A stretch of 64,000 nt of DNA from assembly GCA_021613535.1 (NCBI GenBank), contig CP075492.1, forward strand, positions 4,340,001 through 4,404,000, read 5' to 3'. A program made the translations under genes and the position numbers. Origin of the DNA: Adineta vaga. Lineage: Eukaryota; Animalia; Rotifera. Each line of letters begins with the position of its first letter. Position 1 is the first letter of the stretch. Below the pieces are notes generated by a model. That model had not been told where the DNA came from, did not search any database, and saw only the letters and a list, made by a program, of their open reading frames with translations. Positions 10,500 through 63,996 of the stretch are shown piece after piece.

Positions 10500-11693
10500 T
10501 CACATCCATGTTGCTGCCATATTTGAAAACAAAACCAAAACTGCAAAGAAGGTAATAAGCCATGTTGAAATATTCAAGATTACACCTTTTGATCCGGATC
10601 CTGAATTCGATCCTGATCCTGATCCTGATCCTGATCCTGATGAGAATAAAGTTGCATAAGATGATTTTGTATAACTTGTCGCTGGATTTGTTGTACAATT
10701 TGGTTTAAAATCAGGATACGTTCCTGGTCCAAAACAACCAGTAAGATAAGGATAGGTCGATGTTGCAAAATAACCATAGTTACCAATCGAATCATAAAAC
10801 ATACCATTACAAATATCAAAACCTGATGTTACTTGAGCACCTGATGATAAATATGGACCATAAATAACATGACCATCTTTAGCAATACCAATTACTGTTA
10901 GTGTTCGATATGATGAAAATGTTTGAACTGAATATGTTGCTATACTATTTAAACATCCGATTTGCGGTGAACAATTTGTTAAATTACCCGATGGAGGATT
11001 CACCGTACATCCGCTTCCAATATGATAGTGCAATTCACCACCACCTCCTGGATGTGATAAACATTGATCTGCTCCTTCTGCTGCATAGCTAGATGGATTT
11101 GGATAGAATGGATCAACTTGATTCGCACTATTAACATTGAAAATGCTAACACCATCAACAGCTACACCGGCTATTACACTCATCGCCATACTGCTTTGAT
11201 ACATAACAAAACTGGATGCTGTTGGAACATCTGCATGATTTGAAATGTTGCATAAAAGTTTACTGAGTTCTCCAGCATTTGCTGGTGCTTTATTAGGTGA
11301 ATTGACACTTACATCAGGATTGAAATTCACTTCAAAATCTATATTCAATTCAGTAATTGGTGCAGTCAAGGGCACAAGGGAGCAACGTCGTGGTAGACCA
11401 TTGGATTGAATTCGAATACGTACTGTTGAACCATTAATACATGTTACAGCAAGTTTTTGTTGAAAAACACATACCCCATTAATCATGGAACCAGGACATG
11501 ATATATTACTCAATTGTGGACATGTCACATTAACACCTGGTGTCATTCGAATATTAGCAACTGGTCCATTAGTTGAAGTCCGAGCAAATTTAGAAGCTAT
11601 TTGCAAACAATCTTGATATGAGTTACTTGCTGTTCCTGAAGCTATTCCAACAATAGATAATAATAATAAAATATGTATTGATTGAAGCATCAT
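10500..11693 (-). CDS. Secreted Cys-rich YHYH-domain protein, probably GPI/membrane anchored (397 aa, intronless)
   Basis: Signal peptide; YHYH-family motifs SNGLP, GVAVDGVSIF, DQCLSHP..LHYH, IGIAKDGHVIYGPY, DICNG, YFATSTYPY..GCF; GS linker; hydrophobic C-terminus. Confidence 0.75.
   Translation of the reverse strand: MMLQSIHILLLLSIVGIASGTASNSYQDCLQIASKFARTSTNGPVANIRMTPGVNVTCPQLSNISCPGSMINGVCVFQQKLAVTCINGSTVRIRIQSNGLPRRCSLVPLTAPITELNIDFEVNFNPDVSVNSPNKAPANAGELSKLLCNISNHADVPTASSFVMYQSSMAMSVIAGVAVDGVSIFNVNSANQVDPFYPNPSSYAAEGADQCLSHPGGGGELHYHIGSGCTVNPPSGNLTNCSPQIGCLNSIATYSVQTFSSYRTLTVIGIAKDGHVIYGPYLSSGAQVTSGFDICNGMFYDSIGNYGYFATSTYPYLTGCFGPGTYPDFKPNCTTNPATSYTKSSYATLFSSGSGSGSGSGSNSGSGSKGVILNISTWLITFFAVLVLFSNMAATWM
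10591..10643 (-). repeat. Hexamer microsatellite (GATCCT)n encoding an SGSGSG linker
   Basis: gatccggatcctgaattcgatcctgatcctgatcctgatcctgatcctga read directly. Confidence 0.85.
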
Positions 11694-16938: not shown

Positions 16939-17454
16939 TGTTTCTAAAAGTACGACGAATGTGTGTATTTAAGATGCTTTGATGTTGTTTTTTCTTACTT
17001 TAGACGATAGTTAAAATATAATATCGATCGAAGATTAGAAGAAATACAAATAAACGATAATTTTCTCTTTGTATATAGAGAAGACGAAATAAGGTGCACT
17101 ATATTTTCTCTTTTGTCTCTCTCTCTCTCGTGTGTACACCACTCTCCACAACTGAAAAAAAAGGAAAACATATACATAGTCGCGTGTTTCTAATATATTT
17201 ACGAGAAAAAGTGAATATACTTAAAAGAGAAGAAAGATTCTTCCTTTCGATTTGTAACTCATTATAAAGTCATAAAATCACTACAGATCAATTTTTATTA
17301 ATTCTCCTTAGAAAAAAAATTATCAAAGAATCTACAATGTATTTTTGTTCGAGTATTCACATGGTGCCATTCGCAAGATTTTTATAGCTGAAGAACAAAT
17401 TATTTGACGAATATATGCTGAACAGAAAATTCATTTCATTGTTGTTTCCGTTAA

Positions 17455-19157
17455 GAGAGAGTCCGTGAGAGGAGACCCCTATTCTATGCATATCGCGTCG
17501 CTGAAAAATTTTTTTTTTCGATTTTATTTTTTAAAATGAAAGGTCTGATTGAACTATAGATAAATCCAAAATATTAGATCATTCGGACTTACCTATGAAA
17601 AATGCGAGCAAAAACACGTTTTATGGGTCATTTTTTATGCTCAAAAATGGATAAAGAATAATGTACTCAGTATTTTGACGATAACTCGCGATTCACTTAA
17701 CCGTTTTAGGTCGGGGACGTCTCGTTCGAGAGAGAATCATATAGGGTATAAGTCTAACTCATCAAAGTCTTTCATATATACAGTTTTGAAAATGCTGTAG
17801 GGCAAGAACCCTCCTAGAACTCTCAATTTGGAATACTCCAAATTATCAGTATTTTCGAGTTTTCTCGCGCTGTGATAAAGATACCACGCTGAATTTTTTA
17901 CTGGAGATACATGACATGGAGACGCATCTTTTCGTATAAGATCATCCCAGTCGGAAACACTCGGAAGTACTACTTAGTATGAGTCACACTGTAACTGACC
18001 GACAAAACTCGGATCGAAAAAACCGTCATATGATATGAAAAAATATTTCAGAGATAGAAATAGACTTCAGATTCGGAATCAGCACGCAAAACTGCATTAG
18101 AAAATATATTTTAAAATATTATTTTTCATGAAAAAATGAACTGTCTTCGAAACCATTGAAATCAATATGTGTCGATGTATTTTTTGATGCTGATTCCGAA
18201 TCTGATACTTTTGTATGTAAAAATTCAACTATTATTAGCAGTGTCAGACAAAGAACGGGTCCGATTGGTGGAGAAACCTCGGTCGTGTTCAAGAGGTTCA
18301 CCTGTTCTCTTTATTATCATACCCTTTGAAGCTTGAAGAGTACATGGTTTTAAAGCTAGGCACCTAGTCTCTCTCATGCAAAAAGGTCCAGATCAATATT
18401 TTTCTTCATTTGAGAATTGCAAGCCAGCATAAGTATAGCGAATTGATAGTTTAGTCATAGGTTGGACCCAAAATTTTCATCTCCTCAAATTCATGAAAAA
18501 TAATATTTTAAAATATATTTTCTAATGCAGTTTTGCGTGCTGATTCCGAATCTGAAGTCTATTTCTATCTCTGAAATATTTTTTCATATCATATGACGGT
18601 TTTTTCGATCCGAGTTTTGTCGGTCAGTTACAGTGTGACTCATACTAAGTAGTACTTCCGAGTGTTTCCGACTGGGATGATCTTATACGAAAAGATGCGT
18701 CTCCATGTCATGTATCTCCAGTAAAAAATTCAGCGTGGTATCTTTATCACAGCGCGAGAAAACTCGAAAATACTGATAATTTGGAGTATTCCAAATTGAG
18801 AGTTCTAGGAGGGTTCTTGCCCTACAGCATTTTCAAAACTGTATATATGAAAGACTTTGATGAGTTAGACTTATACCCTATATGATTCTCTCTCGAACGA
18901 GACGTCCCCGACCTAAAACGGTTAAGTGAATCGCGAGTTATCGTCAAAATACTGAGTACATTATTCTTTATCCATTTTTGAGCATAAAAAATGACCCATA
19001 AAACGTGTTTTTGCTCGCATTTTTCATAGGTAAGTCCGAATGATCTAATATTTTGGATTTATCTATAGTTCAATCAGACCTTTCATTTTAAAAAATAAAA
19101 TCGAAAAAAAAAAATTTTTCAGCGACGTCGTTAGGGTCCCCTGTGGCGGACTCTCTC
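17455..19157. mobile_element. Non-autonomous foldback DNA transposon with ~670-bp TIRs, Sola3-like
   Basis: Termini GAGAGAGTCCG...CGGACTCTCTC flanked by TTAA (17451-17454) and TTAT (19158-19161). Arms ~17455-18132 and ~18490-19157 are near-exact reverse complements around a ~357-bp spacer; no transposase ORF. GAG..CTC ends, TTAA target and long TIRs are the described Sola3 hallmarks. Confidence 0.8.
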
Positions 19158-19290
19158 TTATGAACTGATAAAATCGCCCATATATTGTAGTAACAAATGT
19201 CGCTATTCGCTGTTATCAACAGCAACAAGGGATGTCAGTTTTTTTAAAAATTTATATAGCTATTTAAAAAATTCTTTCGTTATCTGATTA

Positions 19291-19361: not shown

Positions 19362-19794
19362 TTGCTGTTGCAAGAGATCGTTTGAAGACATAACTTTACA
19401 CAGATTTCGGAGTTCTTCAAACACATTTAGCAAAATATTTCATGCTTTTCTTGATTACTGTCGGTTATCAAACGTTACATCAAAATTAAATCTAACTGTT
19501 TGATCCATGAAGCATAAATGTAAACTGTCGCGACTCACTGTTTTTTGTTGGAAAAAATCTCAGTGAGAAAGAAGAAAAAAGTCATTGTTTTTCTTCCGAG
19601 ACAAAAAACAGTCATGCTTTTCTGTTTTTTCTTCCAACACATGGTGTGTCTTTCGACGAAATCAAGATACAAAAGTTCGAGTATCACATTGTTATATGTT
19701 CATTAGAGTAAAACACATAAGTATGAGAAATAAATAATCAATTCCATTTCATTTCAGATAAACATATATATTTGACATAAACTATTGACAACGA

Positions 19795-22700
19795 ATGGCA
19801 GATGAAATTCAGAAACTTAGAAAGAACATTGTTTCAAATAATGTTCTAGTATTTGTTGGTCCAGATATATCAATTTATACAACAAATGCTGAACAAAACA
19901 TTTCTCATTGGAAACACCAATTAAAACATCAACAAGTACGACGAAATGGTAAAGATTTTCGAGATGATATGAACCAATCGAACAATACCACAACAGAAGT
20001 TGTTGGTTATTCAAGTACGAGTGATCAAATCAATCATTATTCTAATGAAATAGGTGTTGAAGAAACAGCAAATTTAATGATAACTATTGGTCAATTATTT
20101 CCACAAAACCCAGAACTAATCAAGGCAATAGGCGAATTACAATGTCCAATAATAACAACAAATTATGATTTACTTCTTGAAGATTTACTTAACAAAGTAT
20201 CATTAACATGGAATGAACATTCAAGTGATGGTTCATTTAAAAATATGAAAGATTATATTCTACATCTTTACGGACATTATCAAAAACCAGATTCGCTAGT
20301 TTTCAATAATAAAGATTTTGATGAATTGTATGAAAATAAATTTTTTCAATCTCGCTTTCGAACATTTATTCAAGGTAAAACTTTGTTATTCATTGGTTAT
20401 GAAACTGATCTATCTAATTTAAATTTGTCATGTCTTTTAAAATGGATATTTCATATAACAATTGATGATAATCCACCAACAATTTATAAACTTATTCGAT
20501 CAAATATTCATCGTTCATTATTAGAAAATCTAAAAGAAATTCCATATGGAAATACTTTTGATGATTTAATTTCATTTCTTCGAAATCTTTTATCATTTTC
20601 AACATTAATTCGTGAAAATATTTTATCAATAAATCGAAGAGAAAATGTTCTTAAAAAATATTTAAATTATTTAATAAATGAATATGATCATATAACATTA
20701 TTTGGATATGAAAATGAAGATATTTTATTAAAATTAGAAAATATTTATGTTGAATTAAAATTTGATCCAACACATCCATCAATCAAAGCAATGAAAACAA
20801 TTGATATTAATGAAGAATTTAAAGAGAAAGTTTTATCATATGGATTTTTTAATGAAAATGAAAAAAAGAAATTAATTCGATCAATAATTGAACAAAATTC
20901 TTTTTATTCTGAAACAATTTATCGAGATTTAATGATTGATCAATGGTTAAATATTTTATTATCAAATACACGAATCTTTTCTAATGATGAATCAATATCA
21001 ATTCGAAATAAAATTTCTCAATTAAAACAAAATATTTTTGAAAAAAATCATTTCAAAGAAATAAAACAATATGAAATTCAAGAAGCATTTAATGAATTTA
21101 AACATTTTATTATTTTAGGTCATCCTGGATCTGGAAAAACAACAATATCTAAATGGTTAATAATTAATATGGCAAAACAATGTTTAGGAAAAGAAAATTT
21201 ATTATTTAATGAAAAAAATTCTTCAAAAAATAAAATTCCAATTTTAATTCCAATTTGGAAATATTTTGATCAAATCAAAAATAATAATTGTAAACAATTA
21301 AAATTAAGTTTACTTGAATTTCTTTATGAAAATGTAACATTAAATTCAAATTATTTTACAAAAGAAGAAAATAAAGATTTATCATTATTAATTATGGAAT
21401 CTTTATTAAATGGAAATGTTTTTATTATATTTGAAGGTTTAGATGAAGTTCCTATTTATATTGATCGAAATGATTTAATAAAAGAAATTAATTTATTATT
21501 AGAACATGGAATTGATTATGATTCTAAAAGTAAGAAATTAATTTATTCAATTTATGAAAAAAAAGAAATTAATAATACAAAAGATTTAATTAATGGAAAT
21601 CGTTTTGTTATTACAAGTCGAATTGAAGGAAATTATTTTGAAGAAATTAATTTTTTTATTCCAAGATTAACAATTGAAGATATGTCAAATGAATCTTTAA
21701 GATTATTCTGTAATTCATATACAAAATGTACTAAAAAAGAATTCATTATTGATCAATTATATAATAATATAAGTAAAAATAAAGATATTTTTCAATTAGC
21801 TATTAATCCACAATTAGCAAGTGTTATTGTTTCAATTTATAATCAAGCAAATGAAAAATTACCTGAAAAAAGAATTGATTTATATGAAATAGCAATTGAA
21901 AAAATGATTCAAAGAATAATTTCATCTTCAAATAATGAAAATCTTTATTTAAATTCAATTATTTTATGGTCAATTTTACAAGAAATTGCCGATTATCTTC
22001 ATTATAAAGTTGAAGGATTATCAGAAAATAATCTTAAAGAAATTATAGGAAAATATTATTTAATTAATTATAAAAAAGAAGATTTAAATAATATTGATGA
22101 ATTAATTTTAAAACTTGTTGATATATTTAAATATAAAGTTGGTTTATTAAATGAATTTGGTCATGATAGTTTTCGTTTTATTCATCGAACATTTCAAGAA
22201 TATCTTGCAGCAAAAAATATAATTTATTTAAATGGAATTGAAAGATCAGAAAATATAATTTATGAAAATATTCAATTAAAAATAAATATTCCAAATTGGA
22301 GAGTTCCACTTAATATGACATTTGGAATTTTAAGTAAATTTTATCAAAATAATCAATTATTTTATCGTATTCTTCGAAAATTATTAATTAATGAACAAAT
22401 TTTATCATTATCAACTCTTATTGTACCATTTGTTATTATTGATTCATTAAATGATATGTATTTTTCATCAAAAGAAACCGAACAAGAAATGATTGAGAAA
22501 TTATCTGATTTATTATTATTTGATTATAAAAATCTTTTAGGTTTTTCAAAATTAAAAGAACATCAAACTTTAATTCATTCATATTTCTTAAAATTACAAA
22601 ATAAATCTTCTCTAACAATGATAAAATGGTTTAATGAAAAATTTCATGAAACAAATGAAAATATTTCACCATGTTCAAATATAATTTATCAATTAAAATG

Positions 22701-25700
22701 GTTTTCTCCAAAATTTCATGAAATTTTTTTAAAAAATTTACATTCTGATTCACAAATTTGGAATTGGCCAATCGATTCAATATTAAGATATTATTCAACT
22801 AATATTAAAGATCAATCGATATTAACACAATTACAATTTAAAAAAATACTTTTAGATAATCCACATTTAATTATTCATATTTCGAAAAATATGAATTGGT
22901 TATGTTTAATTATTTCACTTTATGGTGGATATCAAAATTATGATACTCCAAAAACAATCTTAGAATATGCTGAATTAGCTCAATTTCTTTCGTTAAGTGA
23001 TAATGAAAGAATACCTTTTATTTTCTATTTTCGAGATACGTGGGATCGAAATGATACAGCATATAGTATGGCTGTTTATCTTAATGGATTCAAAGCAAAA
23101 GATAATTGGACTAAAATACCAATATTTGATGTTAATGAAATCTATAAAGATTCATTTTTAACAACAAGAATTATTGAATTAGTACGAGAAAATCGAGATA
23201 CACGAGAATTAATTGCAGAATTACGTGAACAAATATCAAACGAACAATTATGTATAAATATAAGAACAGAAGCATCAATTGCATTGATTGTATTAGGAGA
23301 TTTTGATTCTATTCAAAGACAAGACAAAGTATTGAGAACAAATGTTGAAAATAGAATAGAAGAATTAATTTCTGTTTTAAAAGATCCAATTGCAAGATAT
23401 TCTTCACATATTCAGAATTATCTTCTTCAACTTTATAATCATATGAAAATAAATCAATCAAAATATCATTTAAATTATTCTAATTATTGTAGAATATATT
23501 TATCTTTTATCGCAAATAGTGGTGGAATACCAGTAGATACAAAATTACTTGCTGAAACTGTAGATAATATGGATGATAAATGTGATCTTTATGCGGAATA
23601 TTTTGTATCGAAGATGACAGGTAATTCAAGCGGTGATTTGAGATACGATGTTGCTGTTCTATGTGATAAATGTATTAGAATATTGAAAAGTGATTTAATT
23701 ATAAAATCATTTCTAAAAATTAATAATACAATTCAAATTTATAAACCTATTCGATCATGTTCATGGTCTACGGATCAATTTCCATTTGAATCATTTGAAG
23801 AAGATGATATTCCAATAGCATTTCTAAATTGTTTAGAGAATATTCATACAAATATTGCATTTGTAATTGATATTATTTGCGACATCTTTATCAATGAAGA
23901 ATATTTTATTCGAAATTCTGAATTAATTCCAATATTTATTTTATTTATCTTTGGAATTATGTCAAAAGAATTAAACAAAACAGATATTTATTCGAAATTG
24001 TTACCTGAATTAAATGAAATAGTAAATGTTAAAGAATTCTTATTGAATAAAATTCAATCAATGTCTAATCCTTATTATAAATCTCGTGCATTTTATCAAT
24101 TAGCTCAATTTTATGATGAAAAAAGTGATGAACTTCTAAATGAATCAAATAATCTAACGGATAATATTGTAGATGGAAGTTTAAGATTTCAAGTTTTAGA
24201 AAAGATTTATAATGTTGCTCATTATAAAGATGTCAAAGAAAACGATTTTATTCAACACATCTTAGATAAATTAATTTCAACTTTGGATCAAATTGAAAAA
24301 ATTGATGATCAAATTATCGCATCTATTCGATTGTCATTTTATGGATGTGAAGAATTTCGTAAAAAATATCTAAGAAATGCATTAGAAATATTAAATGAAA
24401 TGGATGAAAATAATGAAAAACTGAAATTAATCATAAAATTAAAACCATTAATTTCAATTTATGATGATCTTTGTGAAAAACTTGATGAAATCGTTTTCAA
24501 TTTAGAAAATAATGAATATCGTTATTTTGTAAACTCATATTATGGTAAAATATTATGTGCTAAACAATTAAATGACATTTCAGATAATATTGAATTACAA
24601 AGTCTCTTTCGATTATTTGGACAATTAAATGATGCAAAGATAATTCTTGATAAAGATGATAATTTGAATCAACTATGGCTTAATCTTTATAAAGATATAA
24701 ATAATCAATTGAATATTGAAAAGATTTTAAAAATTGGTATAAACAATGAATTATTTTTGACATCACAAGTTGCAATAATTATTGATGAACTGATAAAACA
24801 AGGAAAAGAAGAAAGAATTTCAATTATATTTCCATATTTAATCAAACCATCGAATGAAGTTTTACCAATTGTTCAAAGATGGTTTATTGATTATCCTAAT
24901 CGACAAATTATGAAATTATCAGCACTTTTACTTGTAGAAACAAAACATATTTTCGAATTAGTAGTTGAAACATTAATCAATCTATTGAATAATGATAATG
25001 ATCAATTAAGATATCGTGCTCAACGAATCTTTCAACATCCTGAACGAGATCCTAGTGAACCGAGTAAAACAATATCTGTCATTGGAGAAAAAGCATTATT
25101 GAAAATTCTTCAAGGAATAGTAATGAAAGAACATCTTCTAAAAGTTCGAGTCTATCTTCGTACATTTTTCTTTGATGTTCTATGGGATGATCCTTTGGTA
25201 TTGAAAAATCTCTGTAGAAGCATAGCTCAATCAAATGATGTGGAAAATTTTCATTTAAATCGAATCAAATTTATAAGTAATCATACTTGGAATGCATTAA
25301 TTCAATCATTACAATCACCATCATATTCATTGTATCGTGAAAATTTCTTTGAGTCAACAATGCGTTTAGTGGAACGTTCTCAAATACAAGAACAAGATTG
25401 GATTGAGTTTCAAAGAATTTTCTCGAATATAGATACAAATTCATTTGTTGAAAAACTATATTTTATACAAACAGATATTGAAATAATTCGATCAATTATT
25501 AATGAAATTTGGAGTTTATCAAATGTAACTGATGAAACTTATTTTGATATTCTTCAATCAAAAATCATTAGTTTATCAACCATAGAAGTAAAAAATATAT
25601 TACTAGAAAATTATCTTTCAGTTCAAAATATTGGTAGATGCACTTTTTTTACTTCTACATTCAATCTGAATCAAACTGTATTGAATACATTGAATGATCT

Positions 25701-26394
25701 TTCTATAAATGTTGTTAATATAGAAAATTTAATCAAATGGTTGATACAAAACATATTACGTTCTAATAATTGGAATAGTCGAATGGTTTCATTAATGATC
25801 GCTGATTGTTTATTATCGTTAGTTTCAGCTTGTGTTCAAAAAGAAAATTATCTTTACCGAAAAATAACTAATGCGTCAAATTTTAATAAAGAACAATTTA
25901 CTAAAATTTTAATCGAAATTCTGAATCATCATCCATGTTTTGGAGCACGAGGAAATGCTTTTATTTTACTTGCCGCAATGGATTTATCTGATCATAAAAT
26001 AATTATTAATGCATTAAATACATTATTTGATGAAAATCTTGTCAAAGAATTAGCTACTATTGGAATTCCTTTGATTCATCTTTCACCAAATGAATTTATT
26101 GATGATCTACTAAATTCTTTAAATAATGATAGTGCAATTAAAGTTTATGAATTATTAAAAATTATTACACAATTTGCTTTAGATGAAAAAATTGATGCTA
26201 ATTGTAAATCAAATATAATTAATTATATTGCAAAAGAAATTGGAGAATTTAAATCGAAAAGACTAGTAAATTATTATTATACGGATATTAAAATTCCATT
26301 TACAACAACATTAGAAAATGAATTTTATAAAACATGGATTAAAATACAAGGACTATCTGGTAAAAGTCAATATTCTATGACAACAAATGAATAA
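19795..26394 (+). CDS. SIR2-like + NACHT (STAND NTPase) + helical (HEAT/ARM-like) repeat protein, 2199 aa, intronless
   Basis: SIR2_2-type motifs VLVFVG, PIITTNYDLLLE, ILHLYG, TLLFIGY. Pre-NACHT LENIYVEL; Walker A ILGHPGSGKTT; Walker B FIIFEGLDEVP; sensor FVITSR; NPQL; WHD FRFIHRTFQEYLAA; long helical C-terminus. Confidence 0.85.
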   Translation: MADEIQKLRKNIVSNNVLVFVGPDISIYTTNAEQNISHWKHQLKHQQVRRNGKDFRDDMNQSNNTTTEVVGYSSTSDQINHYSNEIGVEETANLMITIGQLFPQNPELIKAIGELQCPIITTNYDLLLEDLLNKVSLTWNEHSSDGSFKNMKDYILHLYGHYQKPDSLVFNNKDFDELYENKFFQSRFRTFIQGKTLLFIGYETDLSNLNLSCLLKWIFHITIDDNPPTIYKLIRSNIHRSLLENLKEIPYGNTFDDLISFLRNLLSFSTLIRENILSINRRENVLKKYLNYLINEYDHITLFGYENEDILLKLENIYVELKFDPTHPSIKAMKTIDINEEFKEKVLSYGFFNENEKKKLIRSIIEQNSFYSETIYRDLMIDQWLNILLSNTRIFSNDESISIRNKISQLKQNIFEKNHFKEIKQYEIQEAFNEFKHFIILGHPGSGKTTISKWLIINMAKQCLGKENLLFNEKNSSKNKIPILIPIWKYFDQIKNNNCKQLKLSLLEFLYENVTLNSNYFTKEENKDLSLLIMESLLNGNVFIIFEGLDEVPIYIDRNDLIKEINLLLEHGIDYDSKSKKLIYSIYEKKEINNTKDLINGNRFVITSRIEGNYFEEINFFIPRLTIEDMSNESLRLFCNSYTKCTKKEFIIDQLYNNISKNKDIFQLAINPQLASVIVSIYNQANEKLPEKRIDLYEIAIEKMIQRIISSSNNENLYLNSIILWSILQEIADYLHYKVEGLSENNLKEIIGKYYLINYKKEDLNNIDELILKLVDIFKYKVGLLNEFGHDSFRFIHRTFQEYLAAKNIIYLNGIERSENIIYENIQLKINIPNWRVPLNMTFGILSKFYQNNQLFYRILRKLLINEQILSLSTLIVPFVIIDSLNDMYFSSKETEQEMIEKLSDLLLFDYKNLLGFSKLKEHQTLIHSYFLKLQNKSSLTMIKWFNEKFHETNENISPCSNIIYQLKWFSPKFHEIFLKNLHSDSQIWNWPIDSILRYYSTNIKDQSILTQLQFKKILLDNPHLIIHISKNMNWLCLIISLYGGYQNYDTPKTILEYAELAQFLSLSDNERIPFIFYFRDTWDRNDTAYSMAVYLNGFKAKDNWTKIPIFDVNEIYKDSFLTTRIIELVRENRDTRELIAELREQISNEQLCINIRTEASIALIVLGDFDSIQRQDKVLRTNVENRIEELISVLKDPIARYSSHIQNYLLQLYNHMKINQSKYHLNYSNYCRIYLSFIANSGGIPVDTKLLAETVDNMDDKCDLYAEYFVSKMTGNSSGDLRYDVAVLCDKCIRILKSDLIIKSFLKINNTIQIYKPIRSCSWSTDQFPFESFEEDDIPIAFLNCLENIHTNIAFVIDIICDIFINEEYFIRNSELIPIFILFIFGIMSKELNKTDIYSKLLPELNEIVNVKEFLLNKIQSMSNPYYKSRAFYQLAQFYDEKSDELLNESNNLTDNIVDGSLRFQVLEKIYNVAHYKDVKENDFIQHILDKLISTLDQIEKIDDQIIASIRLSFYGCEEFRKKYLRNALEILNEMDENNEKLKLIIKLKPLISIYDDLCEKLDEIVFNLENNEYRYFVNSYYGKILCAKQLNDISDNIELQSLFRLFGQLNDAKIILDKDDNLNQLWLNLYKDINNQLNIEKILKIGINNELFLTSQVAIIIDELIKQGKEERISIIFPYLIKPSNEVLPIVQRWFIDYPNRQIMKLSALLLVETKHIFELVVETLINLLNNDNDQLRYRAQRIFQHPERDPSEPSKTISVIGEKALLKILQGIVMKEHLLKVRVYLRTFFFDVLWDDPLVLKNLCRSIAQSNDVENFHLNRIKFISNHTWNALIQSLQSPSYSLYRENFFESTMRLVERSQIQEQDWIEFQRIFSNIDTNSFVEKLYFIQTDIEIIRSIINEIWSLSNVTDETYFDILQSKIISLSTIEVKNILLENYLSVQNIGRCTFFTSTFNLNQTVLNTLNDLSINVVNIENLIKWLIQNILRSNNWNSRMVSLMIADCLLSLVSACVQKENYLYRKITNASNFNKEQFTKILIEILNHHPCFGARGNAFILLAAMDLSDHKIIINALNTLFDENLVKELATIGIPLIHLSPNEFIDDLLNSLNNDSAIKVYELLKIITQFALDEKIDANCKSNIINYIAKEIGEFKSKRLVNYYYTDIKIPFTTTLENEFYKTWIKIQGLSGKSQYSMTTNE

Positions 26395-27258
26395 TAAATA
26401 GAATAAACTTAAAGATATGACGAATTGTCTTTTTTTTTGTTTGTAAAATAATCAAGAATATTGAGATCGTAACGTGTCATACGATCTAACGTTTACTATT
26501 TTTTGAAAATAAAAAGGCGAGACAAAAGTGAATACAGAGTTTCTGATTTTGTAAATTTTCTCTTTTCTTTGCAATTCTGACTTGTAAACAAAATTAATGA
26601 GAATGGTGATAATCACACAAGAACAAATGTCATCGATGATTCAAAAGAAAGATTTACATCTTTAGGAATAGAAGAAAAGCGTATGAGATATATAGACCAA
26701 TTCAGTAGTGACACGAAAAACTCAGATTAGTATACTCACACCCATCATTTGATTCCCGGTTGGAGTGGACAATACTCTGCTGATAATGATTATACGAATG
26801 TTAGTATTCTATTTCCAATAGTAATGTACAGATATACAACAATAACTGTTTTTGTTCACACAAATGGTGTAAGTGAATGTCATGATCAATCTCTTTTTTC
26901 ATAAATAGACATTGTTGTTCGAAATTAAATTAATTTTGTTTAGGTACTTTATTTAGCTAACTACTCTACTGACTACAGTAGTACATCTCTTCCAACATCT
27001 TTGTATCTATTCAAGAACATCTCAAGATGTTTATTATGGCACAACAGAAACAACACCGAATTGAACGTGAGTTTTTGAATATTACATAGCTCGATTTTCA
27101 ATGCTCAGTAGTTATTATCATTTTCAAATAGTGTTTTATGAAAATTCACCGGATATCGTTTGAGTGATAATGTGACTTTTATTTCATATGAATAAAAATT
27201 AAAACAGAAAATAGATTTTAGAGAATCTTCCTAAATGAACAATCAAAGATCGATTGAA

Positions 27259-28610
27259 CTATGTCATAAGATCTTCAAGTAATTTCAATAAATGTCGTGA
27301 TGTGACCAATGAATGTCGACATGAATTGAATAGTTTTAAATCAAAATGTGATTTTGGAGGCAGTAATGTTTGTTGATTTAATTCATCTTTAAATTGATTT
27401 CTTATCGATGATATAGTATTAATACTTTCACAAATCGTTGATAAATTTGTTAAATCTAAAATGAATGTTTGTATTGAATTGAGTTTATCAATTGATGATA
27501 AAATTAATTCATAGAATGTTGAAGAAAATTTTGATTGAATGGAAGGTAATAAACGATTGAATTGTTTCAAAAGCTGAAATTATAAAATAAAAGAAATGAT
27601 TTCAATCGGGAAAATGAAACATACTGATCGAAATAAAGAATTTATCTTGTTTGTTTCTTGATTATTGGAATTATTTGTTGAAATGGATTGTTCAGTTGAT
27701 GAAGATAGATCAATTATATTGTTATTTTTGTTTTGTTCGATTCTCAAACAACGATTTCGAAGACTCGGTAAAAGTAGAGGAGAAATTCATAGAAAAGAAA
27801 TAGTTTAGAATAGAAAAATGACTTGTAGATTGTCATAAAATAGACAAAATGAATTAAAAACACTTGAAAACAATTGCAGATGACGAAAATTGTTTGTATT
27901 TTGATGAGATTGTTGTAATGGAATGATAATTCCAAAAACATAACCATAGATAACAAAAATATTTTCATATAATTGTATTAAGATTTGATTTGAATGATCT
28001 TGTGAAACTAATTGACGAATATTTGTCATAAGATCATTGATAGAATGTTCAAATGAATAATCTTCTAAGCATTAAAGAAAAGAAAATAAAGAAATCAATT
28101 CTTTTTCAGATAATTACTATTTTTTGACGGAAGATCGTTTTCTATTGTCATTATTCTTGGTAGATTGTCATTACTACCTACATTAAATTAAATAAAGAAA
28201 AAGATATTCAAAGAAAATAAGTTTGAATACTTTGATGTGTACAAAGATAAATAGAAATACTATTTCCCTGTAATACATTTCGATTGAGATATTCACGAAA
28301 TGTTTTATATTCAAATAAATTAAATTGTTGTTGTTCAAAATCATATAAAAACGTTTGATCTTGTGTATTATCTATGTGGAAGAAGAGAAAATCAAAGAAA
28401 GAATAGTGAAATGACATTACCTAATTTATAAAGTTTAAGAAGTTGTTGATGAATATCTTTGAAAGTCATTTGATTATGATACAAAAGACAAGAACGAGTT
28501 CCACCACCATTTTTAAGATCAATTGTTTTAATGATACCCTTGTTCGTCAATAGGAGACGACCACAACGATATTTCGTCTTTTTTCGATGAAGATTTGAAT
28601 ATTTAGGCAT
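27259..28610 (-). CDS. Uncharacterised multi-exon protein with an N-terminal GGGTR-motif (possibly ubiquitin-like) domain
   Basis: Successive minus-strand open segments (28392-28610, 28208-28417, 27805-28029, 27259-27570) with host-like codon usage, separated by short GT-AG introns. Confidence 0.55.
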
Positions 28611-29004
28611 TTAAACAGTTAGTTTTCTTTTCTTTCTTGAACTGATCGATGTTATCTTAATGATTGAAATGAAAACATGTGGTTTATTTTGAACAATATT
28701 CATCACATTCGAATAAGACTCGATTAATTTTTCAAGTTTTTTATTTATTACAATCAGTAAAGCAATTGTTGTTTCTTGATGTGTTATTTCATTCATTCAG
28801 TTCAAGTTATCTAAACTATGATCATTCATTTACATGTGTCCAATACGAAAAGAACGAGAAAAAAACTGGTGTAGACTCTGACTGAAACAATACGATCTAA
28901 ACAGACGAAAGAAAATTTGTCTAAATCAAATAAACAAGTGACAAATGTTGCATTGTTATTAGAAACGAGATCAATAATCTCGAATGTGTATTCTAAATAG
29001 AAAC

Positions 29005-30987
29005 ATGGTAATATTACATATCATCACTATATTCTTGTTGATAACTATTACAAAGACAAATGCAAGATCAAGTAAGATAAGATCAAAACTTTAGATGAAA
29101 TGATGAAAAAGCTTGTTTGTTTGTTTGTTATAGATTTCGTGCACATATCAATCAATGCATCTCGAGTGTCAACATCATCATGTTCAACATACTCTAGTAT
29201 TCCATTAATTGATCCTGTTACAACAAATATGCGAACATTGATCGATGATCTATCGAATTGTCGATATTCATCATGGGATCTTGTTCGTTGGTATTTGTCA
29301 CGTATTGATGATGTAAATCGACAAGGATCTCATCCACTTCATGCTGTCATTGAAATCAATCCTGATGCATTAGATATTGCTAATGCACTTGATAAAGAAC
29401 GAAAAATGAATGGAAGAAGATCATTACTTCATGGAATACCCATTCTAATCAAAGATAACATTGCAACAGATGATCAAATGAAAACAACAGCTGGTAGTTT
29501 AGCACTTGTCAATTCACGTGTACCACGAGATGCATTTGTAGTTGAACAACTAAGAAAAGCAGGTGTAATCATACTTGGTAAAACATCATTGACAGAATGG
29601 AGTAATTTTAAAACAGAAAATCTTACAAGACAAGGATGGTCACCACGAGGTGGTTTACCCAGGTAAACGAATTCTGCTGAAAAGAACAAATAGAGAATGA
29701 TATTTGATTTGTTTTAGTTCAGCTTATGTTGCTGATGGTGATCCAGGTGGAAGTAGTAGTGGTTCTGCAATTGCGACAAGTGCTGGTTTATGTGCAGCAG
29801 CATTAGGAACAGAAACTTGTGGTAGTATTATTTCACCAGCTAGTCGTGCAAATATTGTTGGTCTTAAACCAACTGTTGGATTAACATCACGTTCAGGTGT
29901 TATTCCCATCTCATATGATCATGATAGTGTTGGTCCAATGGGTAAAACAGTTGAAGATGTTGCTCTTTTACTTGGTAGATGATGAAATCAATTATTTAAA
30001 TATTGTTGTTGTTGTTGTTGTTTTTGTTGTGGTTGATATATTTAGAAGTGATAGAAAGTGTTGATAGTCGAGATAATGCAACACAACAAGCAGGAATTGT
30101 TCGTCATCAAAATTACACTCGATTTTTACAAGGAATCGAAGGACTTCGAAATCTTCGATTGGGTGTTGTTCGTCAAGGTCATTTGTATTTTCTTTATTCA
30201 GTGTTAATAATTTCAAATGAATTCTTTTATATTTTTAGCAATCAATATATCAATAGAAAAAGAAAATCAATTCCAAAAAGCTATTGATATTCTACGTTTT
30301 CATGGTGCAATTGTGATTGATCCAGTGAATGTTACTGGTTTAGACGATGAGAATTTAATAAGTTATTTGAAAGATTTGATGACATATAATTTTCGTAAAG
30401 ATCTTCGAAATTATTTATCTGAACTTGAAAATACAAATATTCGATCATTAAAAGATATTATTGAATTTAATCTTCAACATGTTGATGAAGAATTTCATCA
30501 TGAATATTCTCCTAATCAACAAATATTCGTTTTAGCTGAAGATCATATGAATATGACTGCGGATGAATATGCAATTTTATACAATAAAACTCGTGAAATA
30601 GGTGGAAAGAATGGAATTGATGCAACGTAAGTTGATATTTCTCGATTTTATTTCTGAAATCAAACTGAATTTAGATTGAATGAATATGAATTAGATGCAA
30701 TTATTGTTCCTGATCCTGAACATGAAATGACATTATTTGCATCATTTGCTGGTTATCCATTGATTGTTGTTCCATTAGGTTTTAATGAATCAAATAATGA
30801 ACCGTATGGTTTGATGTTTGTTGGAAGAGCATGGTCAGAATCGATGCTTTTACGTGTTGCACATGGATTTGAGCAAGCATTTCCATTGAGAAATCGAATT
30901 CGACCTAAATATGCTGAACAGAATAGTTCAATTGTTGAATTTCTTTTTAAAATTATCGAATATCTAAGAAAACTTTTTATAATTTGA
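29005..30987 (+). CDS. Secreted amidase-signature family enzyme (peptide-amidase-like)
   Basis: Signal-peptide exon [22 protein letters not shown] (ATG 29005) splices in frame. Motifs [55 protein letters not shown]; Lys-Ser-Ser triad present. Confidence 0.9.
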
Positions 30988-32194
30988 AATTCTTTGAATA
31001 ATAGTTGAAATAGAAATAGTATCTCTTCTTTTGTTTGTTCTCTTTGTGAAAAATATCTTTTATAGTTTTATTTTCCTTTTAGAAGAAGTAGTTAATAATA
31101 ATAATAATAATATAAAATAACGTAGAGATGAACGTTGAACATTCGTCGTAACATATACTACCTCACTCCCTACTTTCATTACTTTGATTGTCAATATTGA
31201 TTAATTATATGGAAGAAACTTGTCGTTCTATCATGAAACTTATTTCCTATGTAGTGGTTATGATTGATGATTCTATGTTAATCAACTGAGGAAGTCATAG
31301 TATCACAGAGATTGGCAAAATAATAAATGCATCTATTGTCAAGTTATTTTGATATTTTTCATCGATTTAATCAACATATGTAAAATAATAACATTTTTCT
31401 GATAATACAGGCTATAAAAACTGTTGTCAGAGATGACAATCGTAAATGTTCTTTTGTATGGAATAGAAAAATTGAACCATAAATCAACATGTATCATTAT
31501 TAAGATGATGTATTCGGTGGTTCGAATGCGATTTCATTATTTCTATCAATGTACCTAAGATCTGAGACACATCACATTGTATTAACGAGAAAAATGTTAA
31601 CCTTGAATGTCACTGTTATTTACACTAAATATTTAATGCATTGTTCGTCAATTTACTCAATCGAACTGCTTTTATATATTTCTCTAACTGCAATCAAAAA
31701 CATGTGGACTCCCAAGACGCTGTTGAATACTTTGTTTTTTTTCTCTTCAATATTAATTATAGAAAACAAGAAATGATAACAACGGTTCATCATTTGGAAT
31801 ATTTATCTAGAATTCATTGGTTTACCATTGACAATAGTTCTAAAAGTGCTTCTTTGATACCTTTCGAAGTTGATCTATATATATATATTTACATTTCAAT
31901 TATTAATTCTTTCTTCTTTCGTGTGACTATTTCATAGAAGAAAATTATACTCTAATATGAAGAAAAATGAATAATTATTTCTGATAATAATCCCACATGA
32001 GACTTTTGAATTTATAGTGACAGGCATTGCCTGATTATAAAGCTTTTCATTTTCTCTCTCAATAATATTTTCGATCAAAGACTAAATAGAAAATAAAACT
32101 TTCTAATTCGTTCTTCTTTTAATTTTATTTAACAAAACAATGGCAAAGAATGATAATGCTCTTCAATGTTCTCATCGATTGTTTTGTATAGCTT

Positions 32195-58653: not shown

Positions 58654-61600
58654 TCAGATGTTTCTTTCTTGAATGATTTCAAGATTCTTTTGCCATTGTT
58701 TTAGTTTCGAATGATTTGATGGTAATGAACTTCTACCAACTAGAAGAGTCTGTTCAGCAAACAAAAATGCTTTTGAATATTCTCCCATTCGATAATACAT
58801 CGTTCCAATATTATTATACAATACAGCCATATTGAGTTTATCTGACGGAAGTATACTCTTACATATATGAAGTGCTCTTTCATACGACAACAGTGCTTTC
58901 GAATACTCACCCATATTATCATACATAAAACCGATATTATTGTATATAATTGCAAAACTAGGATGAGTCGTTGGAAGAGTTTTTTCAAATATTTCTCGAA
59001 CTTTTTTATACTGACAGAGTGCGCTTGGATAATCACGTAAATCATCATACACCGTACCGATATTATTGTACGCGACAGCTAAATCAAGATAATCTTCAGG
59101 AACTATTTGTTGTTGAATCTTCAATGATCGTTTATAGAATATCAACGCTTTTGAATATTGATCATTGTTTTTATACACTGTACCTATATTATTATAACAT
59201 TTAGCCAAATTCATGCTCTTATCAGGAAATTTCCGATAGATTTGAATTGCTTTTTCGTAATATAGGATTGCTTCGGGACATTTATCTACGTCAGCACATA
59301 CAACAGCCATATTATTGTAAGCAAGAGCTAAATTAATCGGATCTTCAACGAGAGTTTTCTCTTTAATTTCAAATGCTTTTTGATAAAAATCGAATGCTCG
59401 TGAATAATCGCCCATTATGAAATACATGTTACTCATGTTAGTGTAGGATATAAGCAAATCCGATTGATTGGAAAACGTGTTTGTTAGTTTAACATTGAGA
59501 GATTTTTTATAATATAAAAGTCCTTTGGAATAATTGTTCATGTTTTCATAGATTTTACCAATATTATCATAACAAGCTGACAAATCAAAATCAATTTTCG
59601 TAGGTTGTTTTTCTTTTAAATTTAAGATTATTTCATAGAACTCAAGTGCTTTGGTATATTCTTCCATTTTGAAATATGTTGTAGCAATATTATGATAGAA
59701 TACTGACAAATCATTATCAATTGGAGATGAAGTTTGTTGATAAAGTTTTAATCCTTCTTCAAACGATGATAATGCCTTTTTATTTTCACCCATGTTATCG
59801 TAAAGACTACCAATATTATTATAGATTGTTGCACATTCGAAATGATTGATAGACAAACTTTCTTTGTAATCATTTAACGTTTTCTCATAATGTGAAAATG
59901 CTTTCTCATAATCACCAGCTTTGTAATAGGATATTCCAATTCGATTGCAAATCACCAATAGATCCGGATGATTTGAGGGTAAACTTTTTTCATAATATCT
60001 CATTGCTAATGTTGAATCACCCATTTTCTCATAAATCATACCAATATTATGATATCTGGTTAAATCAAGATGATCCGTCAAAAGAAGTTTTTCTTGTAAT
60101 TCGCATGATTTATTGTAATAGAATAATGCATCTGTATAATCACCAGTTTCCTGATAAACATGACCTATATTATCATAACACATAGCTGAACTCGAATGAT
60201 CTTCGGAAAGATCTTTTAAACCTATTTTCAAGGATTTTTTATAGAACAAAATTGCATTTGAATGTTTACCCATTGTCTTATAAATGTCACCGATGTAATT
60301 ATACGTTTTCATTATATCTGTAGGAATTGAAGGCACACTTTCTTGTTTTATTTTTAATGATAGTTCATAGTATACAAGTGCTTGTGAATAATTATTTAAA
60401 TTATAACATACTCGTGCCATATTATCATAACAGACGGCGAAATCTGGATGATTTGATGGCAATGATTGTTGTAAAACATGCAAGCATTGTTGATTATAAT
60501 CCCATGCTTTTGAATATTCACCGAGTTTTTCATATATAACAGTGATATTATTCCAACACGCCATCAAATCAGAATAATTTGGAGGATCTATATTCTTCAG
60601 AATTTGTAAGACTTTTTCATAGGATGATAAGGCTTTGGAATAGTCTTTCATTTTGTCGTAGACTAGACCAATATTGCTAAGGCAAGTAGCTAAATCTAAA
60701 GGGTTAATTGATTGTAATTGTTCTCGACTTAGAAGTGATTTTTCATAGAATAAAATAGCTTTAGAAAACATATCGATATGAAAATAAACATTTGCAATAT
60801 TATCATAGGAAATAGCCATATCGAGAAGTTGTGTAAATGAATTTTCTTCATAGATTTCAATCGCTTTTTCATAATATGGATATGCTTTTAAATAATTGCC
60901 CATATTCTTATGTATAGTGCCCATGCTATTATAACACATAGCTAAATAAGAATTCTCTTTTGGAACTAATTTTTCAAATATATCAAGTGCTTTTTCACAG
61001 AATAGATACGCTTCATGAAGCTTGTTCAGTACGAAATACAATGTGCTGATATTATAATAAGTATTAGCTAGAGCAGAAGGATTAAGAGGTGATAATTGTT
61101 CTTGTAATACCAATGATTTTTCATATGTAGCTAATGCTTGCGAGTATTCTGCCATGGTGCAATATATTTCACTAAGAATGTTGTACGAAATAACTAGTTC
61201 ATGTGTATTAATAGGTACAGCTTGTTCTTGTATTTCAATGGATTTTAATTGAAAAGGAAGTGCTTGAGAATATTCATTCATATTCATGTATATTCTAGAA
61301 ATATTCGTATAGGAAATAATTAAATCTGGATGATTTTTAAGTAAAAACTGTTGTTGAATATTGAGAACTTTTTGATAATTTTCTAATGCTTTTATATAAT
61401 CACCCATACGATTGTATATTAAACCTAAGTTGTTATAACTAGTTATAAAATTCAGATGATTAGGTGAAAAATGTTTTTTGTTTACGTCTATTGCTTGTGT
61501 TTGAAATATCAGAGCCATGTCATATTCACCGATTTGAATGTATAAACAACTAATATTTTCATAGGAATGAATTAAATCTGAATGGTCAGAAGGAAGTATT

Positions 61601-63996
61601 TTTTGTTGAATATGAAGTAATTTTTCGTAGAATAAAAGTGCTTTGATATATTCGCCTGCTTGTTTGTACATTTGAGCTATATCATAGTAAGAAGAACATA
61701 GTTTTACGTCAATTGATGAATAAATTTCTTCTTTAATTTTCACCGATTGTTCATAATATGAAATTGCTTTGATATAATCATTCATCTTTGCATAGATATT
61801 ACCAATATGATCATAGGATAAAATTAAATCATGATGATTGGAAGATAGAATTTGTAATTTCATTTGAAGAGATTTTTCGAACATATTTAGTGCTTCAGAG
61901 AATTCATTCATGTTTTGATAATTCAGGCCAAGTTTGTCATACAATGTGATCAAGTCTGGATGATAAGGTGGAAGAGTTTTTTGTTTGATTTCAAGTGATT
62001 TTTGATAGTTGGTTATTGCTGTTAAATATTCATTTCTTTCCTCATAAATCGTACCGATGTTATCGTAAGAAATAGCTAAATCGAAATGATCTTTAGGAAG
62101 AAGTTTTAGATTAATATCAAGTGCTTTTCCATAGTAATAAAGTGCTTTGGAATAACAGCCAGTATTTCGATATAATCTTCCCATAGTTTGATAAGTTGAA
62201 CATAATGAAGGATGATCTGATGGAAGAATTTCTTCATTCACTTTTTGTTCTTTTTCATAGAAGGATAATGCCTTTATAGAATCATCTATTTTTTCATAGA
62301 TCAGACCAATATTATGGTAGCAAAATGTCCATTTAGAATAATTATAAGGAAGAATATGTTCAGAGATTTTCAATGCTTTTTCATATGAAGTGATCGCTTC
62401 AATATTTTGATCCATTTTGTCATATATTCGACCGAGACTGATATAACAAGCAGATAAATCAGATTCTTTTCCAACATGAGATGATTCTTGACAAGTTTTT
62501 AATAATTTTTGATAAAATAAAAGAGCATTGGGATAATCATTCATTTTGAAATATATATTACCAATCTTATTGTATGAATTTAATAGATACGAATGTTCAG
62601 ATGAAAGCGTATCTTTATAGATATGAAGTGCTTCTGTATATTGTTCTAACTTTTGAATCTCAGAAGGATGAACTTCTTCATCCAAATCATAAATTTTGGT
62701 AGTTATTTGAGAAGAGATAATGATATCTGGTGGATTCAAAGGATTCGGTTGTTGTAAGATTTCACGACTATCTTCAGGATCGATATCATCATTGTCGTTT
62801 CCTTCATCTTCACACGAATATTCGTAGTAAACCGAATTAGATTTACGATCTGTTCTTGCATATTTTCTCGACTGTTCAGGTAAATATGATTCATGTTGTC
62901 TTTTATTTTCATTTGTAGTCAATTTTGATATCATTGAATTTATCTGTTTAGCTTCATCATAGTGATCCATTTTAATTAAAAATGATCTCAATCGATACCA
63001 TTCTTTCAAGTTTGAGAATGTTTTCTCTTTCATATTCTTCATGAATGCATGATAAGCTTGATCTTTGTCATTAATTAATATCAAATTCACTTGAAATAAC
63101 CGTTGTTTATCATTCAATAATTTTATATCGACAATTCGAAAAACGGTATTGAGTGAAAACAGAATTTCATGTTCTGTTTGAGAGCAATTGGCAACGTCAA
63201 TAGAAGCAAACGGCATTGAAGAATTGCACGGATCAATTGTAATAAGGAAAAGAATACTAATTAAGTCAGAATTAAGACATAAACGATGAGCACAAATCAA
63301 AGCAACATTACGATTTTTACTCGCACAGAGAAAATTGTTAAACGACATCAGACCATTCTTGGTTTGCGTCATTTTGATGAAATCTGATTTAGGTAAACCG
63401 TGTGCATGATACACGATCAATTTTTCATCCGAAGAATAGTGGCGAAACTGTTCCGAATATAAATGTTCAATATGTCGATGCAGATCAACTATAAAAAAGC
63501 CGATTTTGATTATGAAATTGACATTCATCGATTGAATAGCACGATTGAGCATTGTATATAAGAATTTATTCGAAGTAAACCACCAACTTGACGTTTTACT
63601 ATAATAATTTTCTTGAAATTTCTTCAGCTGCATAAATTCATCTTGGTTTTTGTCGAATAGATGAGAAAAATCTTTAAGTTGTTCTGATTTAAAGTCGATA
63701 GTCAATAGAATTTCTCTTAGAATTTGCATACACATAAATATCGAATCAATTCTCTGGCCATTCAAAAAACTAATTGAAATATCGTCTTGTTTAGATGATA
63801 GAACAATCTGGTCATTCATCACATCAGTTGATGACATTTCCGATGAAATATGTTGAACTTTATTCCATTGTTGATAATCTTTATCGTCATTTGAAAGAAT
63901 AAATATTTTCTGAATTTGATCAATATCATGAATCAATGGAATGATATTTTCACAGAATATATCAGTTGATACTAAATAAACTTTTCCATCTATCAT
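58654..63996 (-). CDS. ADP-ribosyltransferase-like domain + long TPR array protein; probably continues past the window edge
   Basis: N-terminal WWFT..FLYTMLNRA, LIVYHAHG, LMSFNNFLCAS, PFASI, EHEILFS; followed by about 30 ~42-aa TPR units (HPDLAxSYNNIGxVY..YSKALxxYEKxL); no intron in 5.3 kb. Confidence 0.85.
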   Translation of the reverse strand: MIDGKVYLVSTDIFCENIIPLIHDIDQIQKIFILSNDDKDYQQWNKVQHISSEMSSTDVMNDQIVLSSKQDDISISFLNGQRIDSIFMCMQILREILLTIDFKSEQLKDFSHLFDKNQDEFMQLKKFQENYYSKTSSWWFTSNKFLYTMLNRAIQSMNVNFIIKIGFFIVDLHRHIEHLYSEQFRHYSSDEKLIVYHAHGLPKSDFIKMTQTKNGLMSFNNFLCASKNRNVALICAHRLCLNSDLISILFLITIDPCNSSMPFASIDVANCSQTEHEILFSLNTVFRIVDIKLLNDKQRLFQVNLILINDKDQAYHAFMKNMKEKTFSNLKEWYRLRSFLIKMDHYDEAKQINSMISKLTTNENKRQHESYLPEQSRKYARTDRKSNSVYYEYSCEDEGNDNDDIDPEDSREILQQPNPLNPPDIIISSQITTKIYDLDEEVHPSEIQKLEQYTEALHIYKDTLSSEHSYLLNSYNKIGNIYFKMNDYPNALLFYQKLLKTCQESSHVGKESDLSACYISLGRIYDKMDQNIEAITSYEKALKISEHILPYNYSKWTFCYHNIGLIYEKIDDSIKALSFYEKEQKVNEEILPSDHPSLCSTYQTMGRLYRNTGCYSKALYYYGKALDINLKLLPKDHFDLAISYDNIGTIYEERNEYLTAITNYQKSLEIKQKTLPPYHPDLITLYDKLGLNYQNMNEFSEALNMFEKSLQMKLQILSSNHHDLILSYDHIGNIYAKMNDYIKAISYYEQSVKIKEEIYSSIDVKLCSSYYDIAQMYKQAGEYIKALLFYEKLLHIQQKILPSDHSDLIHSYENISCLYIQIGEYDMALIFQTQAIDVNKKHFSPNHLNFITSYNNLGLIYNRMGDYIKALENYQKVLNIQQQFLLKNHPDLIISYTNISRIYMNMNEYSQALPFQLKSIEIQEQAVPINTHELVISYNILSEIYCTMAEYSQALATYEKSLVLQEQLSPLNPSALANTYYNISTLYFVLNKLHEAYLFCEKALDIFEKLVPKENSYLAMCYNSMGTIHKNMGNYLKAYPYYEKAIEIYEENSFTQLLDMAISYDNIANVYFHIDMFSKAILFYEKSLLSREQLQSINPLDLATCLSNIGLVYDKMKDYSKALSSYEKVLQILKNIDPPNYSDLMACWNNITVIYEKLGEYSKAWDYNQQCLHVLQQSLPSNHPDFAVCYDNMARVCYNLNNYSQALVYYELSLKIKQESVPSIPTDIMKTYNYIGDIYKTMGKHSNAILFYKKSLKIGLKDLSEDHSSSAMCYDNIGHVYQETGDYTDALFYYNKSCELQEKLLLTDHLDLTRYHNIGMIYEKMGDSTLAMRYYEKSLPSNHPDLLVICNRIGISYYKAGDYEKAFSHYEKTLNDYKESLSINHFECATIYNNIGSLYDNMGENKKALSSFEEGLKLYQQTSSPIDNDLSVFYHNIATTYFKMEEYTKALEFYEIILNLKEKQPTKIDFDLSACYDNIGKIYENMNNYSKGLLYYKKSLNVKLTNTFSNQSDLLISYTNMSNMYFIMGDYSRAFDFYQKAFEIKEKTLVEDPINLALAYNNMAVVCADVDKCPEAILYYEKAIQIYRKFPDKSMNLAKCYNNIGTVYKNNDQYSKALIFYKRSLKIQQQIVPEDYLDLAVAYNNIGTVYDDLRDYPSALCQYKKVREIFEKTLPTTHPSFAIIYNNIGFMYDNMGEYSKALLSYERALHICKSILPSDKLNMAVLYNNIGTMYYRMGEYSKAFLFAEQTLLVGRSSLPSNHSKLKQWQKNLEIIQERNI

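Follow-up and report, generated by a model that had tools for sequence, protein, structure and literature searches.

A SIR2-NACHT-solenoid gene of the rotifer Adineta vaga, very likely taken whole from a bacterium and probably impaired in its SIR2 active site

The 64,000-nucleotide stretch of Adineta vaga contig CP075492.1 analysed here (positions 4,340,001 to 4,404,000 of the forward strand, hereafter the window) carries at 19795-26394 (+) a single uninterrupted open reading frame (ORF) of 2199 amino acids in one exon, having a SIR2 domain, a NACHT-type STAND module and a long helical C-terminus. With modest confidence, it is read as the gene of an NLR-like STAND receptor, acquired from a bacterium with SIR2, NACHT and solenoid all together, and the SIR2 domain of this copy as probably non-catalytic, with assembly as a scaffold or partner as the more likely output. 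Taken by itself, the transfer of the whole gene from bacteria is highly likely. Judging from sequence comparison, what is new here is that a gene transferred whole has a bacterial sister that can be traced, and that catalytic residues have been lost repeatedly. The features of the protein are the following, in window coordinates.

19795..26394, forward strand: single-exon ORF, SIR2-NACHT-helical solenoid, 2199 residues, aligned end to end with bdelloid orthologues (42-62%) and with the protein P0051 (35%)
19795..20598, forward strand: SIR2_2/SIRim domain (residues 1-268) of the FAM118-like subfamily with a degenerate active site, from Pfam, fold and Protein Data Bank (PDB) sequence match
19858..19872, forward strand: NAD-binding loop, G-P-D-I-S in place of G-x-G-x-S (Asp24); Gly in 66 of 67 outside relatives, Asp in 9 of 9 Adineta-clade copies
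20161..20163, forward strand: Asn123 of TTNYD, retained, equivalent to FAM118B N163 and ThsA N112 by alignment
20269..20271, forward strand: Tyr159, replacing the catalytic His (FAM118B H206, ThsA H152); His in 65 of 67 outside relatives and in P0051
20395..20418, forward strand: second Gly loop, G-Y-E (Glu203), and Asn208 replacing the Asp equivalent to FAM118B D255; Gly in 65 of 67 and Asp in 67 of 67 outside relatives
20647..22494, forward strand: NACHT-type STAND module (residues 285-900) with nucleotide-binding, helical and winged-helix domains, from fold match
21118..21141, forward strand: Walker A GHPGSGKT, intact, its Lys invariant in the family by alignment
21433..21447, forward strand: Walker B EGLDE, of D[GAS]hDE type with Glu for the usual first Asp, from alignment
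22495..26391, forward strand: alpha-helical solenoid of about 1300 residues, putative sensor, from the model; homologous lengthwise to the C-termini of bacterial NACHT proteins

Homologues were searched with a profile against 1.84 billion representatives. The bacterial sister, P0051, has 2242 amino acids and is 35% identical to the rotifer protein over residues 1-2190. Its contig, of 260 kb and dense in genes, also carries relaxase, NikA/MobC-like, MFS, AraC, HxlR, DUF5009 and ABC-transporter genes, and P0051 recurs in another assembly, where its upstream neighbour is the same. By gene content this contig is bacterial, and its gene families suggest a Bacteroidota-like source. Besides P0051, a broad set of proteins of 2000-2600 amino acids is homologous over the NACHT module and the whole C-terminus (a solenoid of 1200 residues), with 21-25% identity, C-terminal profile scores of up to 437 bits to bacterial-type proteins, and varied N-terminal effectors (CHAT, caspase-like, TIR-like and SIR2). 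The named members belong to Phormidium, Anabaena, Lewinellaceae, Saprospiraceae and Cytophagales, bearing CHAT in Phormidium and Lewinellaceae and a caspase-like effector in Anabaena, and one bacterial relative adjoins a TIR-NB-ARC-TPR gene and a type IV secretion system coupling gene. The rotifer family appears as an animal offshoot of this bacterial family.

In the NACHT tree (all trees LG+G4, with composition bias flagged), the rotifer-type family is one clade (100/99) with P0051 as its sister (100/100), followed by a branch of giant ankyrin-type proteins, including some on bacterial contigs (100/99), within a larger bacterial-type clade (100/96). P0051 is also sister to the family in the quick trees of the SIR2 domain (SH-aLRT, the SH-like approximate likelihood ratio test, 99) and of the C-terminus (100), and in the NACHT and C-terminal trees both lie within a bacterial radiation with swapped effectors. 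The approximately unbiased (AU) test rejects a single clade of all eukaryote-derived NACHTs (p 4.6e-7). Descent from the other NACHT genes of the host was also rejected (AU p 1e-3), its other long NACHTs being a separate clade. When scored with the same profile, bacterial-type SIR2 domains reach at least 166 bits and FAM118B 97, which disfavours a FAM118 fusion within animals; the named best SIR2 matches outside the family are bacterial (Minicystis, Verrucomicrobiota and Isosphaeraceae), and the Atlas look-alikes are bacterial SIR2-NACHT clusters. No separate SIR2_2 gene was found in the genome by an exon-wise search, which can miss such genes, and a SIR2-only word search gave 4 matches, none of them FAM118. 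A metagenome scan with a family-motif query returned one bdelloid-type locus, and viral contigs gave no match.

A first-pass annotation, made by a model from the sequence alone, had proposed a horizontal acquisition, and this is supported by the full-length sister on a bacterial contig, the nesting among bacterial NACHTs and the AU tests, the separate SIR2 and NACHT phylogenies it suggested both giving P0051 as sister. It had also named possible counter-evidence, and neither a nesting of the NACHT module among metazoan ones, nor a non-sirtuin N-terminus, nor a lack of linkage to the host was observed. The gene does reside in an animal genome, being on a chromosome-scale contig, in multiple copies and with orthologues in other bdelloids. 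Contamination was rejected on these grounds (the four copies being spread over three chromosomes and several bdelloid species having orthologues) and on the DNA runs of several studies. The base composition is fully adapted to the host and the donor signature is gone, as the GC content at third codon positions (GC3) is 0.09, even lower than the 0.12-0.23 of the neighbouring genes.

Regarding the SIR2 domain, Pfam SIR2_2 matches residues 119-205 (E 1e-13, 52 bits against a cut-off of 24.5), and NPHP3_N is also above its cut-off in the ORF. The structures are AlphaFold models built from family alignments; that of residues 1-270 is a sirtuin (Rossmann) fold, with Z 16.9 to DSR2 and 16.7 to ThsA, and Foldseek ranks Avs5, a SIR2-STAND protein (EfAvs5, PDB 9jap), first for the N-terminal model. 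By sequence, the best PDB match of the domain is FAM118B (profile E 2e-36), Avs5 having only 20 bits.

The active site was compared by alignment to FAM118B and 67 outside relatives, in which five SIR2 positions are near-invariant: the Gly in each of the two GxG motifs, the Asn of TTNYD, the His of HxHG and the Asp pairing with the His. All five are canonical in 64 of the 67 outside relatives and in P0051, and the rotifer copy under study keeps the Asn only. In FAM118B, His206 and Asn163 are each required, H206A alone abolishing the activity, and a role of D255 has been described (PMC12700824); the model of FAM118B has this Asp paired with the His. The rotifer copy has kept the counterparts of FAM118B W65 and Y307, a Trp and a Tyr that stack on NAD in that model, and has lost about 15 residues from the small subdomain, which is poorly modelled. 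No Adineta-clade copy has all five residues, and in the A. vaga genome the His is retained only in a frameshifted copy on chromosome 5. In the rest of the family, 11 of 37 members are canonical and 21 of 37 keep both Asn and His; on the family tree (40 members), the state of the His changes about ten times, and one C-to-T substitution is enough to turn His into Tyr.

Since the active site is degenerate and such losses recur across the family, NADase activity is doubtful. Catalysis is likely impaired in the copy under study, whose SIR2 fold is kept under purifying selection but is probably catalytically dead or strongly impaired, and this copy would more likely act as a sensor or a scaffold/partner subunit than as an enzyme. 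The NAD-degrading effector proposed in the first-pass annotation is therefore not upheld for this copy, the equivalents of His206, Asp255 and both Gly loops being replaced.

The model of residues 280-900 has a NACHT fold, matching NOD2 (Z 20.8) and NLRP3 (Z 20.7) over about 400 residues. In the hidden Markov model search that had been suggested, SIR2_2 (PF13289) was found, the NACHT profile PF05729 stayed below its cut-off in the ORF (17.2 against 26.7 bits), and several orthologues carry PF05729 matches. The Glu at the first Walker B position is limited, among the rows checked, to the family, P0053 (described below) and P0051. The C-terminus is modelled as almost entirely helical (pLDDT 79.5, pTM 0.79), its fold searches giving only weak HEAT/importin-like and generic helical-repeat matches, and by Pfam the solenoid is not ankyrin or TPR. 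Neither a leucine-rich repeat (LRR) sensor nor a death-fold effector was found in the protein by Pfam, model or fold search. Sirtuin, NACHT and helical C-terminus were all seen in the predicted structures. The SIR2-STAND-helical architecture noticed earlier is borne out by Pfam SIR2_2 and the predicted folds, and each motif cited is present at its expected position in the 6.6-kb intron-free ORF (TTNYD at residue 121, LLFIGY at 197, LENIYVEL at 314, Walker A at 442, Walker B at 547 and FIHRTFQEY at 795).

Among known systems, Avs5 and the SIR2-bearing bNACHT proteins (Kibby et al., 10.1101/2022.07.19.500537) have the same order of N-terminal SIR2, central STAND and helical C-terminal sensor in a single chain; compared to Avs5, the rotifer protein has a much longer sensor, little sequence likeness (20 bits), an animal host and lost catalytic residues, and it reached none of the PADLOC and NCBIfam system models. 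The eukaryotic SIRim clade A (FAM118B, or SIRanc, and the fungal and animal SIRim-NACHT/NB-ARC-repeat proteins) shares the SIR2 subfamily by profile and the tripartite plan; however, the rotifer SIR2 is closer to bacterial SIR2s than to FAM118B and appears to have been gained with NACHT and sensor as one gene. In this placement FAM118B is the best PDB match and bacterial SIR2s score higher, the tree being one without clade A sequences. The animal NLRs NOD2, NLRP3 and NLRC4 have the NACHT fold in common (Z 19-21), whereas the rotifer protein lacks their death-fold effector and LRR and is only 13-16% identical, and none was recognised among the assignable best profile matches. By analogy, the protein would work like a bacterial SIR2-STAND receptor without being Avs5, any modelled system or a canonical animal NLR.

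SIR2-NACHT-repeat (SIRim) proteins of fungi and animals have already been noted (Bonhomme 2024, 10.1101/2024.09.18.613514), so the uniqueness implied earlier does not hold, and repeated transfers of NACHTs from bacteria to eukaryotes have been described (10.1101/2022.07.19.500537). Rotifers are mentioned neither in the text of Kibby et al. nor in that of Bonhomme, whose accessible supplements gave no rotifer entry either, the literature searches found no description of this rotifer SIR2-NACHT family, and the main study of bdelloid infection does not mention NACHT, NLR or SIR2 (PMC11258130).

The genome assembly has 6 contigs and 100.8 Mb, A. vaga having six chromosomes (PMC8494291). Four copies of the gene, on three chromosomes, are the sole SIR2_2 matches in it. 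The copy under study lies in a duplicated block:

19522..31146, no strand: block duplicated inverted, with a gap at about 27150-28285; second copy at C3:4282554-4293141

This block, of about 10.6 kb, takes in the adjacent amidase gene, which has short introns; the inverted duplicate lies about 66 kb away on the same chromosome, is intact and is 98.9% identical in protein. An independent DNA run shows the junction sequences of the second copy, as loose ends, and contig depth is higher over the block than outside, although depth is not a copy number. The second copy could conceivably be an uncollapsed haplotype, because its divergence (1.3%) is near the species heterozygosity (1.7%). The chromosome 1 copy is intact and 57% identical, and that of chromosome 5 is 60% identical, lacks about 127 codons and has its frame shifted (L021:5468-5474).

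The wider family has about 40 full-length relatives of 42-66% identity in Adineta steineri, A. ricciae, five Rotaria species and metagenome contigs, single-exon where gene structure was looked at. The orthologues of A. steineri, Rotaria and another bdelloid-type contig start at the identical Met and align end to end as one exon, and a hidden intron is not needed. The ratio of nonsynonymous to synonymous substitutions (dN/dS, simple NG86) is 0.33 when the duplicates are compared and ranges from 0.36 to 0.55 against the other copies in all modules, being about 0.5 in SIR2. On a 3.3-Mb eukaryotic-type contig, two family genes stand in tandem (L137:2813-14215), one bearing the His and the other not.

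STAND proteins such as Avs, bNACHT and NLRs go through a cycle of ligand binding, nucleotide exchange and oligomerisation. By analogy with these, a foreign or danger ligand would be bound by the solenoid, then the NACHT module, with its intact Walker A and B, would exchange ADP for ATP and oligomerise, clustering the N-terminal SIR2 domains; ligand sensing, oligomerisation and immune role are thus all put forward by analogy. In family members with a canonical site, clustering would cut NAD+, leading to cell death or signalling, as assembly switches on NAD+ cleavage in Avs5 and in FAM118 (PMC12700824), while the copy under study would assemble without catalysis, as a scaffold or partner. The partner model fits the tandem pair of His-bearing and His-less genes but is not demonstrated by it. 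In evolutionary terms, an ancestor of the sampled bdelloids would have acquired the gene whole from a bacterium, after which it stayed intronless, duplicated repeatedly and adapted fully to the host base composition.

A further member, P0053 (JGI 3300059473 contig), is 41% identical over NACHT and C-terminus, is placed by the C-terminal tree outside the bdelloids sampled and probably has a eukaryotic source; its N-terminal part is an animal-type caspase small subunit in place of SIR2, and 32 nt upstream lies a caspase-domain gene, called separately, an arrangement which hints that the NACHT-solenoid chassis drives cell death. A metagenome scan with P0053 as the query gave no match. It is doubtful, though conceivable, that catalytic and pseudo-catalytic SIR2-NACHT paralogues co-assemble in rotifers as a domesticated bacterial NLR system, the same chassis being re-armed elsewhere with an animal-type caspase, as in P0053.

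Several observations weigh against a receptor taken from bacteria with a non-catalytic SIR2. P0051 is the only close bacterial sequence found, a GTDB scan giving nothing closer than 24-27% among the matches listed; a single EukProt protein stood in the trees for non-bdelloid animal NLRs and FAM118, and many metagenomic rows were treated as bacterial because of their context and type of effector. The sensor region evolves no faster than the rest, and the RNA signal is weak, with a few short, shallow contigs falling in the ORF, seen in a probable RNA run and in another of uncertain type, and none in a further run. Moreover, EfAvs5, in which Asn occupies the position of the His, is an active NADase (PMC11897194), so the loss of the His alone is no proof of inactivity. 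An active SIR2 NADase-NLR with a non-canonical site, depleting NAD+ on pathogen sensing as first annotated, is consistent with this activity of Avs5 without the His, with the intact fold, with the retained Asn123 and W65/Y307 equivalents and with a SIR2 dN/dS of about 0.5 and not 1; however, four near-invariant positions are all altered at once, among them the two residues of the predicted His-Asp pair and two Gly turned acidic, and about 15 residues are gone from the poorly modelled small subdomain, making this reading rather unlikely.

It is unlikely, too, that the SIR2 part of a bacterial-derived STAND gene is slowly decaying, the copy being redundant or the protein kept for a NACHT/solenoid role outside infection, such as desiccation or damage signalling. 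The roughly ten changes of the His state across 40 members, the single step, C to T, from His to Tyr in a gene so rich in A and T (GC3 0.09), the frameshift in the copy of chromosome 5 and the low RNA signal would agree with decay, but the 6.6-kb frame is open in both duplicates with a dN/dS of about 0.33, nearly all full-length members retain SIR2, and the effectors of the relatives are of conflict type. Finally, the gene could have been assembled or long inherited in eukaryotes, P0051 then being a back-transfer to a bacterium or a mis-assembly. P0051 is indeed a single sequence, divergent eukaryote-like members exist beyond the sampled bdelloids (P0053, P0037/38), and SIRim clade A is ancient in eukaryotes (10.1101/2024.09.18.613514); however, P0051 falls outside all animal-type copies in three trees with the next branches bacterial too, has the same upstream neighbour in two assemblies, and the AU tests also argue against this origin, which is very unlikely.

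For NACHT and SIR2, transfer from bacteria to eukaryotes is as a rule deduced from ancient, domain-level trees; in this case the whole receptor still aligns end to end with a protein of a bacterial contig (35%), and donor-type and animal versions can therefore be compared side by side for the ligand of the sensor, the blocking of phages by the bacterial form and the fate of the NAD-cutting effector (kept, lost or swapped) in an animal whose immunity, as in bdelloids generally, is little studied. If true, the co-assembly of paralogues and the re-arming with a caspase would be a testable bridge from bacterial Avs-type defence to animal cell-death immunity.

Other genes of related type were also observed. 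The EukProt transcriptome protein P0224 is a Death-Death-NACHT protein, distant kin of the wider bacterial family over NACHT and C-terminus and a separate eukaryotic member. The A. vaga genome has other single-ORF NACHT-type genes of 2000-2280 amino acids (L031:1519-8361, L032:3189-9500, L033:2474-8440 and L035:2290-8760), having helical N-termini without Pfam match; L031-L033, which the tree covered, form a clade apart from the SIR2 family. Upstream of the duplicate copy, an ORF (G000:C3:4293825-4295141, reverse strand) matches ADP-ribosyltransferase weakly (Pfam ART, E 8e-4, under the cut-off).

Within the window, a foldback element of 1.7 kb at 17452-19160, with perfectly complementary arms of 629 nt and an apparent TA target duplication, ends about 630 bp upstream of the ORF and is probably a non-autonomous terminal inverted repeat (TIR) transposon; it is missing beside the duplicate gene copy, copies related at 91-95% are on chromosomes 1 and 5, and older ones are elsewhere. 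A long exon by itself is not unusual here, because a second long ORF at 58654-63996 (-) encodes 1780 amino acids with TPR repeats (a Nephrocystin-3-like TPR array). An ORF at 10500-11693 (-) has a YHYH domain, of a mostly bacterial family, and may be a further foreign gene.

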